A stretch of 63,904 nt of DNA, filler included, from Platydemus manokwari (Eukaryota), in the NCBI GenBank assembly GCA_037951405.1. It is 5 parts of 5 records of this genome, joined end to end, with 100 filler letters (N's around TTAATTAATTAA, not from the genome) between each part and the next. Parts side by side here need not be neighbours in the genome. Positions count along the whole stretch, not along the records: positions 16,399 to 26,877 come from JBBMOY011130774.1; 4 more parts are not named here. One strand, given 5' to 3'. Within the stretch, counting starts at the first letter, position 1; every line of letters begins with the position of its first letter. Shown piece after piece: positions 16,399 through 26,877 of the stretch. Below the pieces are notes generated by a model. The model was not told where the DNA came from, did no database searches, and was given only the letters and a program-made list of their open reading frames with translations. The translations under genes were made by a program, and so were the position numbers.

Positions 16399-19300
16399 AA
16401 GCAACAAATATTGACAATTTTTATTAAAATAAAACCAACAATTCAAAAATTATTAATTGAGATACAACAAAATTTGTAGATTCCTCGCCATTGAAGAAAT
16501 ACCTTGCCACAGAAATGTATTTCCAGTCTTAAGTGTAGTCATAAAAATTCTCGAGGAATGTTTTGAAAGTACCAAATATAGTAGCGGGCATCGAATACAT
16601 GGTTATTGATTGTTAGAGTTGAATTTTGGTTTTTAATCTAAAATTGAATTTTATGTAAAAATTTAATTAAAATATGATTAAAAATAAATTTTAATATCAA
16701 ACAACTCTCGAAAAGTCATTACTTTAAAATTGGGTCAAAGGACCCTTTTTCTTAACTTAAGCCCAAAATTATAATATTTTAAGCACTCAGAATTAGAATA
16801 TTTTTAAATAATATATATTCAAAATTATTAAAACTCGTTTGGTTTAAATTTATTTAGATTTTAATTTTCCTCACATCTGAACGAGGTAGCGGAAGCCAAG
16901 TTAACATTAAAAAATATTAATAATAACATCAACTTATAAAAATTCGTGAAATGGTAACCCAGACTACCAAGTGAAACTCTGTTTCCAAAGTATAGGCTTC
17001 CATTCAAAATAAGAACTATATACAAAAATATAAAAGAAAATTTGAAGACAATTTACGTTCATCAAAACACAAACAAATTTATGGCCAAGATTAAATTAAA
17101 CATTATAAATGACATGACCAATGGAAAGGATCATGGAGCAGTAACCAATCCTTTTAGCAATCAATTCTAGAGAATATTTTTTTGAACCCAATCAAAATGA
17201 AAATTTGAGAGGAGATTCAACCAAACACATCAAGTCATTTTTTATTGTGTTAAAATTATAAAAATCCAAAAATTAATTTAACTCGTTAATTTATCGGACG
17301 AAATTTTTTATTTTCTATTCTTTACTTTAATTTAATTTTCTAGAGGTACATTACTCTCTTAATTCCAATTCAAATAACTGATAAATAAATAGGCTAAGCT
17401 TCAATAAATTATAAAATTGTTATGATTTCGTTTAATGATACAGTCCTTAGTAAACAATAAAATTAATTATAGCATTATGAATTTGGTTTTTGGACAAAAG
17501 ACCATTATAATACAATCTCCCGTTTTTGCATATCCTAAGAATTAAAAAAAACTTTGATACTAATTACTGACTTTATTTAGCTTCATTCTAGTGTAGGGTT
17601 TTAAGGCTATTGATAAAATTTAAAGCTACAAGGCTCAGACAATAATTATATGTATTAATGTATGATATTTTATTAGGTGTATGGAATTATTTCTTGCTTG
17701 GAAAGATATTGAACATTTATGATTGAGCTTTATAATTGACAGTAAAATGTAACATAAATTATACCCCAAATACTTACTCCTATAATTAATAAAAAACCAG
17801 TATTAATTATTACAAATTAAACCCGTTAAATTTACCGTATAATAAATCCACCAATTAAAACAATATTCCCTGTGAATTTATTAGTTATCGCACTTAATAA
17901 ATTATAGCTGACGATAAAATAATCGTGCAGAATAAATTATCGCCGACGGCAAATAAAATAATCAACCAGAATAAAATAAATAGCTATACATTTCATCACA
18001 GAAAACTTCTCTGCTGTAGTGGAATTAATAGCAGGGAATTTCTCCTTGCCACAATAAAATGCACGGCATTGAATAAAAATTCGTAGAGAACATCTAAGAA
18101 TGACTCATCGGTGCTTATATAAGGCAGTGATCGTAATCATTACAGCCACAATTGTTATATAAGAATAACCAAAACGTGACATACGATTTAGAAGATCATT
18201 CTCCACCGGGATTAGGATTAGGACATGATCAGTTTATCACTGGAAGAATCAACGGTAAGATACTACATTTTAAAATTACATATTAGAATATCGATTATTC
18301 TTCCTATTTATAGAGTGAAGTCTCAAAAATATCATGAAAAGACATGTCCCCAATATCACGAAGGGCATGTTGGTCTTCAATATGCTACACTGAAATGTAC
18401 ATACTTTCACCGTTTAAGTGTATATAAATTTAAACAAAATCATTTTGTCTTGGTCACCTTCTTCATACTCTTTCAAAATTCTCTCGAAATCGGGTCACGT
18501 GACTATCAAAAATTCCAGTATCCATCTTGATGTTTTTGTTTAGCTTGTTGTGCTAATTTGTGTATATGCGGCTAGTATTATTAGGTAATCTGATCTGAAG
18601 GTAATTTTGTTACTCTCGAATCATTTCTCTAAATCCCCACCTTGTTATTGGAATTTTTAAAAACATATATCATGTACAAATCTATTAACTATATGAATGG
18701 AATTAGAAATGACTTCTTCCCCAGATATGCCATTCAAAACTTGTGGAATTTTATGATTTTTAATTAAGGCAGCGTTATGATGTGAGATAAACTTTGAAAG
18801 TTCAGATTGATTCTAGAGATAGTTATTTATCTACCATTGGTGAAGTCAATCTAGATGAGTAACTTTGATAACTTATATCTTATTGAATATTAAGATAAAC
18901 TGAGATTCATAAATAAATAAATAGATTGTCTTAATGATAGTGATCAGAAGTTGGAAAAAAATTGAATAAGCCAAAATTTGAAAACAATTAAAAACCGACT
19001 GGAATGAATTCCGCGGTTGACCTCGACACATGACTGACAATTGGATAAAACCCAATTACATGACATCACAGTATATTTTCCGGGATAAAATAATTTAACA
19101 TAAAAAATTAAAATTCCAACTTAAAGGTGACACACTCTGGATTATAACATAACAATATAAGAAATTGATTTGTGGACTGATTTTGTTGTCAGTATTACAA
19201 TAATTATTAAGAGATGAATTTTTTTTAAAACGATGGCAAAGTAAGAATTTGATTCAGTAGTTCTTGTATATAAAAATAATATTACATGTATCGCAAATGC

Positions 19301-21073
19301 TATAGATAATATTAAACCCATCAGCTAGGAATAATAAATGATAATTATGCCCCAAAAATGGAAGCTCATAAAGATAAAAACAATAATATTTAGAAGATAT
19401 TAGACACCGGAGAAAATCAGTAATCCGCAAAGAGTTGAAATGCCAGTACCAATATAAATGCTTAGCAATTTCGCTCAGGAAGACAGTAAAATAAAAGCGA
19501 AATAACACTGAGAATAGTTTCGATAGTAAATGGTGAAAATGTGAATTGGATAAAAGACTTATATTGATTATGACAAGCACATTAAATTAAAATAGTTCGT
19601 ATAGGCAATATAAGCTTGATTTTTTTTAATATTCGTGTTTATAATATCAATAAAATAATAACAATAAAGAGTTCTGTTGTCCGGAATCCGTTCTTGTTTT
19701 CTTTTTTCCTCGAATTCTTATGTAAATAGTTTGACTAAATTTGTGTGGCATTTAATTGTTTAATAATTTGTGTAACTTTTATTTGATTAAGCCTTGATTT
19801 ACATATTTCGGACTCACCTGTGTGTGATTAGCTTAATGATCTATTGAAATCCAACAATATCGATTGGTTTGTGAGGAAATTTCAAATTTTTCTTGAAGTT
19901 AAGTTGGGCTGCATTCACAACTTAAATGAATGTCGATAAAAATAATCGAAACTCCTCAAATCCAAATTAAAACCATGTAAAATAATTCAACAGATTTGAT
20001 AATATAATCAATAGAACGGGAGGGGGCTAGCATTAAACTTAAATTTAGAATAAGATAAATAGAAATATTATGTGTGTGTAATGTAGAACACGTTTACAGA
20101 CTTCAAATACTGTGACCTGCAGGGATATTGCCATCAATTAATATATTGAGGAGAACTATGTGGTGCCTGACAATAATCGAGAACTTTGTAAGAAACTATA
20201 TAATATGATTTTTGACATGTATATAAGCATGCTTCTCGACGAATAGTTTTGAAATAAATAAATTAAAATATAATTAATTTGAGTTTTCTTCTATTAGGTA
20301 CAGTTGATCACTTGGCTTTTATTTCGAAATTGTGGGTATTTGCATTCATTAATTAATATTTCTATTGGTCGGAATGTTTTAGAGAATTGTTATGCAACCT
20401 TTATATTTCTGAAAAACTTTCGAACGTTCCCATGACAACCTATAATGAAGGCAAGAAATCATGCGAAACTATGACTTTTATGGTAATTTATATTGCGAAT
20501 TTTGCCGTTAACTGCTATGATTAATCTGAATTATTATTGTGTTATTTATGGATTTTATTCGTATTTGATCTTATTTCCAAAAATATATATCTACGTTGTA
20601 TTCAACGTAATGGAAAATCGTATCCAGCTATAAAATTTGGAAGATTATTTTATTTGCGATGAATAGAATTTTTATTTTGTTGAGTAATAATCAGATGAGA
20701 TTGTTTAAATTACTATTTCCATCAACAAACAAAAAAACAATGCCCGTGATTAACTGAGATTACACTTGAGGAGTATATTTGTTTCAATTTAGCAAATTAG
20801 TTTCATGTTAGCAATGAAGCTTCGTCTGCTGGAATCCGAACCAAGTTTGAAAAATATCTGAAGTCATGAATCGATAATATTACTTGATCCACCAATAAAG
20901 ATTATTCTTCCTTATGTTTGATTCTGGTCGTTGATTTGCTGGCAAGAATTAATTGGACTAGCTCATGATAATTTAGGGACCAGACTGAATCAAACACTTT
21001 ACTCTTTCTGGTAATAATTTTCGACTGCGTAATTTAAATAATGTTGACATCTGACTAAGTAAAATTTGTAGTA

Positions 21074-21244
21074 CAGTCAAACCTGTTTTTGTGCGGTCTT
21101 TTTTTATGCGCTTTTTTTGTGCCTCTACCGCATAAAAAAAATTTCTTTAATATGCTGTGAAAAATTATTTCTTATAGCTATTTATGAAGTTTTTGAATAT
21201 TTTTTGTGCGGTTTTTTGTAACCGCACAAAAACAGGTTTGACTG
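21074..21244. mobile_element. 171-bp MITE, Tc1/mariner-pogo type
   Basis: Perfect 24-bp TIRs CAGTCAAACCTGTTTTTGTGCGGT (21074-21097 and 21221-21244), with TA on both flanks. The motif TTTTT(G/A)TGCG is reiterated internally. Confidence 0.93.
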
Positions 21245-21760
21245 TATAGCAACGCGACATTGAAAATATTGATAAAACGTCTATATGGGATCTATACCTG
21301 GACCAAAAATTTGTCATTCAGAAAAAATACAAAACACAACTGAGGCATAGAACAACCCGAATTGATGAAGTCCGTGCTGAAAATATAGAGAAGGACCCAA
21401 ATTCACATTTTATATTTCTTTATTTTCAACCATAAGAAATTTCATGAAGTTGATTGCTCTGCTCCAGCCAATGAGGTGATTGTCCGAAGAAATGTGACAT
21501 ATAACATCAGACACCTTATGTCACAGTTTTATTTTAATGTAGTTTCGTTAAATAAAAGTGTATGTCATGGGAGTGCCATCAATATGCACTGAGGCAATTT
21601 AAATAAAATATTTTTGATCAACAAATTTTGTTTACATTTACGCAATAAGTCTGGAAGGGTTAAGTAAATATTTATCATTCATATTGCGTAACAAATAATT
21701 AATTGATTTCGTATATTACATTTATTAGCGTTAAAAACAAATTACACAAAAAATAAATTA

Positions 21761-22731
21761 TCAAATAAGATCATTCAGTATAGTATCGAGAAGGTTGTAT
21801 GTTTCTTCTGAGGTGAGCTGGGCCATATTTTCATATGGTACTGAATTGTTATTCAAATCAGCAGGTGGTAAGGAGAGTTTGGTATCATTTGTTTCAGAAA
21901 AGAATGTTTTAATGAATACTTTTTTCGGTTTAGAGGATACATATTTTTTTATCTTAAAATCTTTTACAATATCCGTTATCTTTGCAGCAACTTCTTCCGC
22001 TTCTGGAATTGTAAGAGCTAATAAGGCAGAATTATCATTTAAGGTTTTAAAATTGCATATTGGAAACTAACAATGAACGACAACTTTTCCACTCTTCGTA
22101 CATTTAGCCATGGTTCGGTATACATTGTATTTTAATCCTCTGGCTTTTGGATTGGGATAGTAATAAAGAAATTGATCTAATTCTGGCTCATAGCTTTTGA
22201 TTGATTACACTCAATAATAGGAAAATTATCGATATAATTACTTACACAAATTTTATGGTGTCCGAATTATAGATTTCTTGAAGATTGATTTCGTAGTTCA
22301 ATTTGAATGATGTGAGAATATTAACGATTTTGAAATTGCAGAATCTGACGTTGGGTTCGATTTTCTTCAACCTTGAAGCAATGATTTTCGCACCTCTCTT
22401 CGTGCTTTCTATACTAAAATTTAGGTTTAATGAAAGACTTTCGTAGTAGAATCGTTTACCTAGTTCCTCCAAGGATTGTCATTTTACCACTACTCCAAAT
22501 TTGAGCTCGAGTAATTTTTGGATTTCTAAGTTCAGTTCTTAAAAGCTGACAAAGGAAAATTCATAATATCATTTGAAACAAGCGAAAATTGAGAAAAATT
22601 ACGTTTTCATAGCAATTATAATATGTATCTATTGAATTTTGAGCGATTTTTTCCAGATTTAAATGACATCTCAGACTAACGACAGCACAGACATTGCAAA
22701 TTTGAAGTTTGATTTTTTCAGGTTCTTCCAT
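21761..22731 (-). CDS. TBPL1: Divergent TBP-like factor (TRF2/TLF/TBPL1 family), 253 aa, complete
   Basis: Exons 22731-22603, 22545-22460, 22413-22246, 22193-22072 and 22017-21761 give 762 nt in frame from ATG to TGA, with GT-AG introns of 57, 46, 52 and 54 nt. The protein has TRF2 signatures RCHLNLEKIA, LRNPKITRAQIWSSGKMTILGGTS, GAKIIASRLKK, FCNFKIVNIL and YEPEL. Confidence 0.88.
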
Positions 22732-25700
22732 TTAATTTATGATTGAAAAAGAATTTTTTAACGATTTTTTCAAACACGTTTCAAAGAAAAAAAATATTTA
22801 ACTAAACAAATACGATAAAATTAATCAATATTTTGAGAATTTTAATTAAATTAAAATAAATTTTTTCTTTAATTAAAAAATATTTTTAATTACTTTAAGG
22901 TTAAAAAAAGTCTTTTAAATAAAATAATTATAAATAAATTGTAAATTTATAAAATCTTATATTAACTTTGTTATAATTACGACACCAAACCTAAATAAAC
23001 TTTGACATATTGATTAATAATTTTAATGTTTTTTCATTATATTACTTAAAATTATAATTTATTATAGTTTGTAGTACTTAAAGTATTTCTTAACTCACTT
23101 TTTATTGAATCTTATTCAATTGTTTTGTTGTTTCGGATTTACAAATTTTTCATTAAACCAAAATTCAAAACATCTACCTTTATTTAAATTTAGAGCTAAC
23201 TTATTATTTTTAAAAAATTTGGAATTTGTATTTGTAAAGGTTTTAATTATAAAACTTTTCAAGTTAAAATGGTGAATGGCAAAAGATTAATTAAGATTTA
23301 TAAAAAAAATTTCGAAACGACACAGAGTACAACGAATGTCGAATAGTGTATATTATAACAATAGATTTGAAAATGCCAGATTGTCAATATCGAACTAATC
23401 AACATTATTGCGATTAGTTCCGGAATTCTAACTGTTGTTCAACATGGTTGATAATACCGGTTAATATGATAAGAACATCTCTAGTTATGAATATTAAAAT
23501 AAATTTTGTATAATATTAGAAAACAACTCGACATAGTGATGGGAACCGTGAATTATAAATCTGGTTACTAATTTAAACAAACCAACAATACATAGATACC
23601 TGATGGTTCCACCAATATTCGGCTCTTAACAGATTAATAGATTCCACGTATATGATCACAGTAAACGAGATAAAATAATATATTCAATATAATATAAATT
23701 AATAAATGTGTAATGCATGAAGGTTAGACAGATAAAAAGTGTAGTGACTGGAAGGTGTTTAGTTGTCACCGGAGGGAACTACAAGCCACCTTTCTGCCAC
23801 AAAAACTATGAAAATGATTTTGAAATATATTGATTCAACAACAATTTGTAGGCGATTCTTTATTGCTTGTAATTAATCTTCCTGCAGAAGTTGATGTAAG
23901 ATTGAAAACGACGAGTGAAAAGTAAATTATCATATAGAAATTTGAGAAGCAATTAAAAGATTGAAAATCGGCAATGAAGTTTGCAACGTATGTGATGAAG
24001 TATCACAAAATTAACTCTTCTTATATACTATTTTACTTGTTAATTTTTAATGTGTGGTCATGGTGATTTATAGTGTTGCCATGACGACTTGCATTTAAAT
24101 TTAAAAACACTGTCTATGCGTACGATTGTCGTGGCAACATGATGAATAATATGATCAAATCTGATTTTTAAGAATTTTATTAATCTTATTATTAACATCC
24201 TTAATATGATTATTATTATATTATTATCCCTTATGACACCGGTTATAGTAAAAATATGTTTTTGAATAATATCTACTTAACAATTCCAAAATCATGTGAA
24301 TAAAAATAGGTTAAACGACAGTCACTTCAAGTTACGTCACGGCTCACAAAAATACTATAAATAATATTGGCATACATTTCAAAAGCTTAATTGATCAAAT
24401 TCGAATAATATCAATACGAATTCTTTTACAAGATGAAAATGAGAACAAATTCACCAAAATCTAATTTCATTGTCTTGAAGTAAACTAAAAATCGATCCAA
24501 ATAATCATATTTACTTCCCAAAAACTTTTTTTTGTAATTAAAGAGATTTATTTAATCAGATTACCAATCGGAATCGTCATTATAAATTTTTTCAAAAATT
24601 TTATAAATAATAAAGTATAAATTGATAAAAATACCATAAAAAATTTGTTAGACCTTATTCTAGCATTAAATTCAAAAATAAAAACTGTCACAGCTGTGTA
24701 GTTGTGCTTATGGAACAATCTATAAATCCAATGTGTATTTTATCGATAGGCCACTTTGGTAGACCTTTCTATTGGACAGTATCGAACAAGTTTTAGAAGT
24801 CACCAATGCATAAATCGATTTCCGGTAGATTTGAACTTGTATCGATAGGATTCAAATGATATCGTCAATGTAATGACAAAAATAGAACCCAGTTTAAATT
24901 TGAAAATCAATAGCTACAAAATCATAATATAAAACCACACATGAAAATAATTCAGAAAATAGCCAAACATTTATTGCAAAGGAAAAAATCTTCAAGTCAA
25001 CATTTTTCTTTCGTAATAATTTTTACATATTTTGAAAAAATAATATAAAATTCAATAATAATTATCGAGGATTAGATAATAACGGAACATAAGAGCCAAT
25101 GCAATCATTATAAATAGAAGTAAAACCGTGCGTAAAAACAATAAATCATATTTCGAGTTACAAATACAGCTAAAATTATGAATGAAATGTAAGAAATTCA
25201 ACAACAAGAAAAGAAAGGTCTTTTCGGAAAATAAGTATCGAAATCGGGACTACCGGTGTTATCTGATACATTTTTTCTGATATTATCATTTCTTCTGATG
25301 GTGACGACCGCCAAATTAACGAGTTGGTATGGGCTGAATTTATTTTGAAGTGCAGTTGTCAGATTGAAGATCTATTCACAGATTATTCACATATATCGAA
25401 TATTTAACAAACAACCTGTCCACGAACTACAGCCATCTGATTCCTAAATGTCGATTTCTTGAAATCTTTGTCGAGCTAGACCAAAAGAGAAGAAAACTCA
25501 ATAAATCAATCAGTTGTAAAATTTATTCAAATTGTGTTTTTTACTAAATTAATAACATATTGATTATATTAGTTTAATAATTTCATGAACCTGGTGGGCC
25601 ACAAAAATTAGGATTGTTATATTTCAAATGCCAATGTCTTTTCAAGCATTGTAATCATCATTTTATATTTACAGGAAATATTTTGTCAATAAAGGGAAAC

Positions 25701-25885
25701 CAAAATGTTATGGAACAAATATTTTCCTTGTGCATTTTATCGATTATTTCTTTTCAATGCAAGTGCTTCAATTATATTTTTTCTAGTAGGCTGCAAAAAC
25801 AGGACCGAGAAACAAATACACGTACAATTACTTTGCAGTATTAGTATGCTATTGTGAGAAGAATTCGTCTTCATTCGTTTAGTCG

Positions 25886-25929
<44 letters not shown>

Positions 25930-26777
25930 AAAAAGCAGATTTATTACAAAAGACTGAGGATGTTTCTGAATCTCAATAGGTCTGGTAATCGAGGATATTT
26001 ATATTTAAAACTCAAGGTAACCTATATTTAAATTATAATAATAGCACTATTTGAATGAAACTATCGATCTACCTATTCACTGCTATGCTTAATAGAGAAA
26101 TTCTAAAACAAGATATAAATTAAGCTTGGAAAACACTCAATATCGTCTATTCGAGTTAAACGATAAAATATTGATCGAACTCTATGGAACATTATTTTTA
26201 CAATAGTCACAAAAATATGATTGATAAAGATTCGACAAGAATAAATCAATATTAGCACATATTTTTAAAAGAAAAATCATATTCTTATCACAATATTTGA
26301 AGTGTTCATTTATTTAAACTTAATCAAATGTCATGTATATTAAATATTGATTCTAACTGGTAACGATCATTTGTCTAACTTTTCGATTTTGTTTTAATTC
26401 CCTCATTTTTGTTACTTATGTGAGACTTATTGACGAATTCTTCATTCACACTTTCATTGACAGAGATCAATTTCTTAAATTCTCTAATCTTATGTTTTGG
26501 CACCATTTTTGTTTTCATAACATTCTTTTAGAAATTTTTCGATAATGTGTTATTTAGTCGAAGGTTAAAATATTCTTAACCAATGAATCATATATGATTC
26601 AGCACATGTGAACTCACACAACTGTGCCTCAAATGCTCAGTTTTCTACAGCTCCCGAATAATAGCTAAACATCGGATTTCTGCATATAGGAAATTAAATG
26701 GTCTTATAATATAGTTTATATTCGTTGAATTACATTTGTTTTATGAACAATGAACAAATTAGTTTATTTGTGATATA

Positions 26778-26877
26778 TTAGGTTGGTGCAAAAATAATGA
26801 CCTTTTTTAAATTGGCTTTTCATTTTTAAATATTAAATTGAAGATCTTATGAAAATTATTCATATAATATATCATTT
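26778..26877 (+). mobile_element. Mariner-type TIR and element end, truncated by a gap
   Basis: TA followed by TTAGGTTGGTGCAAAAATAATGAC, matching the TTAGGTTGGTGCAAAA terminus of Hsmar1/cecropia-type mariners. Confidence 0.7.

Follow-up and report, generated by a model that had tools for sequence, protein, structure and literature searches.

TBP and its paralogs TRF1, TRF2 and TRF3 define separate transcription programmes. TRF2, also known as TBPL1 or TLF, binds TFIIA and TFIIB, not the TATA box, and drives transcription from TATA-less promoters (PMC4180970, PMC3142196; see also PMC5006001). In the TRF2 signature of Duttke et al., the first three of the intercalating phenylalanines of TBP are altered, with replacements of Phe by Trp and of Phe by His being noted (PMC4180970). 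TRF2 evolves approximately five times faster than TBP (PMC4180970), and the TLF cores are 40-45% identical across metazoans (PMC3142196). Here we describe a gene of this kind in Platydemus manokwari (GenBank assembly GCA_037951405.1). The window analysed is a stretch of 63,904 nucleotides (nt), filler included, in which 5 parts of 5 records are joined; the gene lies on the minus strand at positions 21761-22731, within the 10.5-kb piece from JBBMOY011130774.1 (16399-26877). Judged from its sequence, the gene is derived from the TRF2/TBPL1 family and belongs to a small, strongly diverged and internally conserved TRF2 subgroup, and is thus no one-off novelty. We consider it a functional, selectively maintained TRF2/TBPL1 gene and lean, with a probability of roughly 0.6, towards the lineage's own fast-evolving TRF2 over a species-specific new paralog.

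The gene consists of five small exons, which sum to 762 nt (253 codons and a TGA stop) and are joined at four exact GT..AG junctions, as the sequence-only reading of this DNA had proposed. All four introns are very short (57, 46, 52 and 54 nt), with G + C contents of 23-28%. In an exhaustive walk over the GT/AG pairs, every path to an open frame needed at least four introns, and an in-frame TAA is located immediately 5' of the ATG. The encoded protein carries RCHLNL, IWSSGK, YEPEL, PNPKARGLKYNV, AKCTKSG and the C-terminal EETYNLLDTILNDLI. The features of the locus, with amino acids (aa) numbered from the initial Met, are as follows.

22603-22731, minus strand: exon 1 (129 nt; ATG at 22731; aa 1-43), with strand S1 and helix H1 of TBP repeat 1 and RCHLNL
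22546-22602, minus strand: intron 1 (57 nt; GT..AG; phase 0)
22460-22545, minus strand: exon 2 (86 nt; aa 44-72), with the N-terminal stirrup and IWSSGK; Trp60 codon at 22495-22497
22414-22459, minus strand: intron 2 (46 nt; GT..AG; phase 2)
22246-22413, minus strand: exon 3 (168 nt; aa 72-128), with helix H2 of repeat 1 and strand S1' of repeat 2 (FCNFKIVNIL)
22194-22245, minus strand: intron 3 (52 nt; GT..AG; phase 2)
22072-22193, minus strand: exon 4 (122 nt; aa 128-169), the remodelled half of repeat 2, with YEPEL, Asp134, the insertion and Thr160
22175-22177, minus strand: Asp134, at the position of TBP Phe284 and of the TRF2 His
approximately 22112-22141, minus strand: insertion in the C-terminal stirrup (RGLKYNVYRT, approximately aa 146-155), following a conserved YPNPK; net 9 aa in MAFFT alignments with six canonical TRF2s and with the canonical TRF2 P0003
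22097-22099, minus strand: Thr160, at the position of TBP Phe301
22018-22071, minus strand: intron 4 (54 nt; GTTAGT..TTAG; phase 1)
21761-22017, minus strand: exon 5 (257 nt; aa 169-253 and the TGA stop at 21761-21763), with helix H2' of repeat 2, then the 63-aa tail
21902-21931, minus strand: tail motif (aa 198-207; KPKKVFIKTF) combining a basic cluster with a hydrophobic stretch
21764-21808, minus strand: acidic amphipathic helix at the C-terminus, EETYNLLDTILNDLI (aa 239-253)
21721-21726, minus strand: AATAAA hexamer starting 35 nt past the stop, a candidate polyadenylation signal read from the sequence

For the database, family and fold searches, single exons of the minus strand served as queries (22603-22731, 22462-22545, 22248-22412, 22073-22192 and 21764-22015), and the joined exons were used in local translation, BLAST, MAFFT and the tree against the retrieved proteins. 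The Pfam family PF00352 (TBP) matched exon 1 (E 4.9e-5, profile positions 2-34), exon 2 (E 1.2e-3, positions 43-65) and exon 3 (E 8.4e-4, positions 1-25 of the second repeat); these matches are colinear and reveal two tandem TBP-type repeats. Against solved TBPs, the single exons gave weak matches of 14-16 bits, yet at the expected positions, and the relative P0002 introduced below reached approximately 45 bits in phmmer. In local blastp, the joined model scored 100 bits against P0003, and 85-87 bits, with 36-37% identity over the first ~145 aa, against the TBPL1s of Pinctada imbricata and Polyplax serrata (P0008 and P0009, both named 'TATA box-binding protein-like 1' in UniRef). RCHLNL and IWSSGK are identical to the corresponding motifs of these mollusc and louse TBPL1s; together with the scores of 85-100 bits, they support the TRF2 nature that had been claimed for the first repeat. 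A phmmer search with exon 3 among 1.84 billion representatives returned two members of the subgroup, one canonical TRF2 and one unrelated protein, and no TBP. By these bit scores and this library search, the sequence is nearer to TRF2 than to TBP; the tree comparing the TRF2-like proteins was built without a TBP outgroup.

The exon-intron structure tells the same story of descent. The Pinctada imbricata TBPL1 mapped exactly onto its genomic locus (L004), with coding exons of 300, 83, 168, 95 and 242 nt, compared with 129, 86, 168, 122 and 257 nt in Platydemus, exon 3 being of equal length in the two. Each of the four introns occupies the alignment column of its Pinctada counterpart, in the same phase (0, 2, 2, 1), and none is lost with respect to that gene. 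The length differences in exons 2 and 4 (+3 and +27 nt) translate into an N-terminal stirrup longer by one residue and a net gain of 9 aa in the C-terminal stirrup, respectively. This match speaks for the exon model and also for a TBPL1-type ancestry, whether by ordinary inheritance or by segmental duplication, and argues against retroposition.

The closest relatives are few. The exon 3 search retrieved P0001, an 89-aa open reading frame (ORF) on a JGI metagenome contig (L001, 26% G + C); P0002, a protein of 212 aa (UniParc UPI000601C873) with two PF00352 stretches (E 1.2e-12); P0003 itself, a canonical TRF2 of 253 aa from a Logan contig; and an unrelated protein of 1473 aa. A query with P0002 added P0005, the last exon of a third relative (contig L002, Logan, 42% G + C), and canonical TBPL1s, among them those of Pinctada and Polyplax, came from a profile built on P0003 and P0002. 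With exon 3 as query, a word-index search covering only proteins of 30-96 aa yielded no candidate and the ESM Atlas no usable match, and the degenerate pattern YEPExD...Y.YPNPK found no contig in the JGI metagenomes beyond L001 itself. An ortholog-like gene is represented on contig L001 by its exons 1-4, and the introns between them, of 46, 49 and 50 nt, coincide in position with those of Platydemus; the intron 4 donor of L001 lies at the same codon position, and the phase of the intron 4 acceptor is consistent in L002. The size of intron 4 varies, from 54 nt in Platydemus to more than 200 nt in L002 (1-201) and more than 1.2 kb in L001 (924-2179, with exon 5 off the contig). P0002 is without exon 1, and its first nine residues resemble a read-through of the intron 1 homolog (compared with L001:232-448). 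As it appears to start inside that intron, P0002 looks like a mis-modelled automatic prediction and does not count as transcript evidence, and the micro-introns are probably the cause; genes of this type are prone to be mis-modelled by automatic annotation, as this one database protein illustrates.

In its second repeat, the Platydemus protein departs from its canonical relatives. At the positions of TBP Phe193, Phe210, Phe284 and Phe301 it has Glu42, Trp60, Asp134 and Thr160, none of the four being Phe. The phmmer alignment of P0002 with the human TBP core 1cdw_A likewise places Trp on Phe210 and Asp on Phe284, where we take chain index 1 of 1cdw_A to be TBP residue 155, such that indices 56 and 130 are residues 210 and 284. 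Thus, all three positions of the published TRF2 signature are altered (Glu42, Trp60 and Asp134). Of the replacements noted for TRF2, Trp for Phe210 is present, while the Phe284 position is Asp in the Platydemus protein, P0002 and L001 versus His in all six canonical TRF2s (P0003 and P0006-P0010). Retention of the fourth Phe (TBP 301), which is a usual trait of TRF2 outside the published signature, is not seen: the residue is Thr in the Platydemus protein, P0002 and L001. Since Thr replaces this otherwise retained Phe, we class the gene as a diverged derivative of TRF2 and not among its typical members. The multiple alignment shows YEPE[LI]H and K[IV]FS[ST]G in the canonical proteins (6/6 with His and Phe), YEPELD and AKCTKSG in the Platydemus protein, and YEPELD and AKLTSNG in P0002 and L001. 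The loss of the Phe kept by canonical TRF2s and the rebuilding of the second repeat by a net 9-aa insertion after YEPEL, both of which had been claimed from the sequence, are therefore borne out, the latter by AKCTKSG and by the 27 nt that exon 4 has gained with respect to Pinctada.

These changes are not confined to Platydemus, as they recur in at least two other organisms. The sequence-only reading had proposed a lineage-specific, TRF2-derived paralog and had named broad sharing of the changes across the clade as part of what would speak against it; sharing with other organisms is what we found. Asp134, Thr160, the insertion (YPNPKxRGxKxNxYxTMAK) and the extra residue of the N-terminal stirrup recur in P0002 and L001, and the tail motif KxVF[IV]KT is also present in P0002 and L002. 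In the maximum-likelihood tree, which carries long-branch warnings, the Platydemus protein, L001 and P0002 form a clade with 100/100 support, separated from the six canonical TRF2s by a long stem of approximately 2.3 changes per site.

Within the subgroup, the gene appears to be under constraint. Amino acid identity between Platydemus and L001 is 62, 54, 44 and 68% for exons 1-4, and the remodelled exon 4 is thus the best conserved, aligning without gaps to both L001 and P0002. The introns differ in length and align at 54-61%. Conservation in exons 3 and 4 is lowest at third codon positions (0.38 and 0.53). Across the 156 codons aligned without gaps, the proportion of nonsynonymous differences (pN) is 0.27 and that of synonymous differences (pS) is 0.79; as the synonymous sites are saturated, the ratio of approximately 0.34 is to be read as an upper bound only. 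Taken together, the frame open over 253 codons, the conserved introns and a pN far below pS uphold the claim of an intact gene.

The fold was approached through the relative P0002. Its AlphaFold2 model, based on an alignment of 10 rows, has a mean predicted local distance difference test score (pLDDT) of 67.8, with 80-88 in the core, 61-73 in the insertion and less than 50 in the tail. The best Foldseek match of this model was the human TBP core 1cdw_A (TM score 0.71, root-mean-square deviation 1.9 A, 147 columns), and all 44 matches at E <= 0.001 were TBP-containing chains. By way of this model, the Platydemus protein is predicted to keep the TBP saddle fold.

Beyond the second repeat lies a tail of 63 aa (residues 191-253), with a charge of +5 over residues 191-210 and of -6 over residues 211-253. 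Its P, K, V, F, K and T residues, which form a P-K-x-V-F-x-K-T core, are invariant in the Platydemus protein, P0002 and L002. The hydrophobic moment of the C-terminal 15 residues is 0.45, compared with 0.22 +/- 0.10 for shuffles, only 1.6% of which reach 0.45. For exon 5 alone, AlphaFold2 predicted a helix at residues 3-19 (H2' of repeat 2), a disordered middle and a second helix at residues 69-83 (pLDDT 71-80). The extension of approximately 60 aa with an amphipathic acidic helix that had been proposed is thus recovered; its description as a new tail stands only in part, as a basic cluster followed by an acidic stretch is also found in canonical invertebrate TBPL1s. The C-terminus of L002 (ETQQVLDDLLN) resembles the terminal helix, although the alignment is about as good with an ELL motif in the interior of L002, which leaves the match ambiguous. 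Long Q-rich tails were observed in two of the canonical TRF2s, P0006 (L008, a Logan contig from run ERR1712110) and P0007 (L007, a JGI metagenome contig).

What such a protein may do can be proposed from the elements that it keeps. In TBP, the YEPEL motif holds acidic and Leu residues that contact TFIIB, as known from work on the yeast and human proteins. The Platydemus protein keeps YEPEL, the R-x-P-K N-terminal stirrup and the Asn residues found in strands S1 and S1', and would therefore be expected to act independently of TATA, as TRF2 does, and to assemble with TFIIA and TFIIB. At TATA-less promoters, such a factor would serve to nucleate pre-initiation complexes of RNA polymerase II or to stabilise them, acting through contacts with TFIIA and TFIIB and without bending a TATA box; the YEPEL stirrup may serve as the docking element for TFIIB and the R-x-P-K stirrup as that for TFIIA. 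As the intercalating Phe residues are absent and similarity to TBP is low, binding to TATA is not expected. The basic insertion of net 9 aa, at the stirrup tip just after the TFIIB-contact motif, is probably the likeliest place for an altered or added contact, either with TFIIB or with flanking DNA. In the tail, the basic motif is a candidate nuclear localisation signal, and the acidic helix at the end may be a motif for partner binding or for activation. We infer from the features described above what the partners would be, that TATA is not bound, and how the insertion and the tail may act.

Apart from the TBP-like gene, the piece at 16399-26877 (24-33% G + C) showed no convincing coding ORF, tRNA, Rfam family or second TBP-like exon. 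This gene-poor neighbourhood of 10.5 kb contrasts with the very short introns of the gene. Approximately 500 nt past its 3' end lies a high-copy repeat (21084-21250), at which many short contigs break and the summed contig depth is 580-1300, compared with approximately 12 over the gene. Upstream of the ATG, the sequence (22732-23100) is extremely AT-rich, with approximately 20% G + C in 22899-23398, and includes a 22-nt AT tandem repeat (22840-22892). An (AT)13 microsatellite is located at 25886-25911, and six-frame translations suggest adjoining runs of TG/CA dinucleotides. A scan for bacterial promoters and terminators was uninformative, as expected for a eukaryote.

Is this gene, then, the TRF2 of its lineage or an addition to it? 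Given the fast evolution of TRF2 and TLF cores that are only 40-45% identical, a sole ortholog as divergent as this one is plausible. The full ancestral intron set is kept, and the rarity of the subgroup in very large libraries is easier to reconcile with a narrow lineage that has been poorly sampled than with an old and widespread paralog. The same data can be arranged around an extra, specialised TRF2-derived paralog that exists clade-wide beside a canonical TRF2, with a changed interface to TFIIB or DNA, a new partner-binding tail and perhaps use in restricted tissues or stages. The very long stem to the canonical TRF2s (approximately 2.3 changes per site), the loss of hallmarks (His to Asp, Phe to Thr) and the gain of a conserved insertion would suit such a history; a remodelled exon that is the most constrained of all fits a fixed new function, and P0003, although a fast-evolving canonical TRF2, still has both the His and the Phe. 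However, no second TBP-family gene was seen within the 10.5 kb searched, and the complete ancestral introns, which speak against a retrocopy, are neutral between an ortholog and a segmental duplicate. On balance, we regard a paralog of this type as possible, at distinctly less than even odds. It is likewise only tentatively that we would see in the subgroup a second, so far undescribed TBP-family class beside canonical TRF2, with all four Phe lost, a basic stirrup insertion, a conserved tail (the KxVF[IV]KT motif and the acidic helix at its end) and, as a 'system factor', partners and promoters of its own. The suggested comparison with Drosophila TRF4/TRF5 is unconfirmed, as the literature look-up returned poly(A) polymerases.

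Several observations weigh against the preferred reading of a functional TRF2 that is the lineage's own. The TRF2-typical His and Phe, at the Phe284 and Phe301 positions, are both absent. Exons 4 and 5 had no Pfam TBP match in the exon-wise scan; the phmmer alignment of P0002 with TBP also ends at the insertion, and for the fold of repeat 2 we therefore rely on a relative's model of medium confidence. Only short motifs point to binding of TFIIA and TFIIB, and a canonical TRF2 may coexist elsewhere in the genome, 10.5 kb having been searched, which would make the gene described here a paralog. In addition, the sole public run with the locus is genomic; its one contig, of 1852 nt, is colinear with exons and introns and thus gives no confirmation of the junctions. 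Together with the gene-poor, AT-rich and repeat-bearing surroundings, this restriction to genomic reads might suggest a decaying or never-expressed copy, the open spliced frame of which is fortuitous or recent. We consider this very improbable, because 253 codons stay open over four exact GT..AG junctions, the intron positions are conserved with both L001 and Pinctada, pN is far below pS, and the derived residues are kept at 41-68% identity across organisms with G + C contents of 26%-42%. More improbable still is a TBP-like gene acquired from a giant virus or otherwise horizontally, and hence not descended from an animal TRF2. This idea stems from the ESM Atlas, in which P0002 lies nearest to clusters of TBP-domain proteins from Nucleocytoviricota (score 0.94); however, that feature search yields neither an alignment nor an E-value, and the likeness is likely a convergence of divergent TBP folds in embedding space. 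A viral origin was rejected on account of the exact RCHLNL and IWSSGK motifs, intron positions and phases identical to those of the mollusc TBPL1, and the IMG/VR searches, in which neither peptide patterns with tblastn nor the signature DNA pattern found a relative.

Under the reading preferred here, a sole TRF2 of its lineage, the gene would mark those features of TRF2 that are dispensable; as an extra copy, it would represent a new, specialised initiation factor. In either case, the conserved insertion and tail motif offer concrete targets for binding tests. The subgroup also shows how far the TRF2 scaffold can drift under selection, having no intercalating Phe and a TFIIB-side stirrup that is rebuilt and yet the most conserved part.

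Compared with known members of the family, the Platydemus protein resembles TBP in the saddle fold predicted through P0002 and in its YEPEL and R-x-P-K stirrup motifs, and differs in the absence of all four DNA-intercalating Phe residues and in low sequence similarity. The single TBP-family proteins of some protists have also lost these residues fully or partly and still serve transcription initiation: the TBP of Crypthecodinium cohnii lost all four TATA-interacting Phe residues and that of Trypanosoma brucei two (PMC4180970). Those changes are independent and affect the only TBP of the organism, whereas the changes described here sit on the backbone, motifs and gene structure of a TRF2. Two of the canonical TRF2s, P0006 and P0007, have an insertion of approximately 5 aa in the same S2'-S3' loop, indicating that this loop tolerates insertions in TRF2s and seems to be a hot spot for them; both keep the His and the Phe, however, and their inserted sequence is unrelated to that of the Platydemus protein. 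The closest resemblance is to bilaterian TRF2/TBPL1/TLF as a whole, with two TBP-type repeats, RCHLNL, IWSSGK, Trp at the Phe210 position, altered Phe193 and Phe284 positions, the YEPEL stirrup and four coding introns placed and phased as in Pinctada TBPL1, and, among the invertebrate proteins, a C-terminal extension in which a basic cluster is followed by an acidic stretch. From these TRF2s it differs by Asp in place of His, Thr in place of the retained Phe301, a C-terminal stirrup lengthened by the insertion (net 9 aa), an N-terminal stirrup longer by one residue, a second half of repeat 2 that Pfam does not recognise, and a leader of 6 aa before the core, compared with approximately 20-70 aa in the canonical TRF2s examined.

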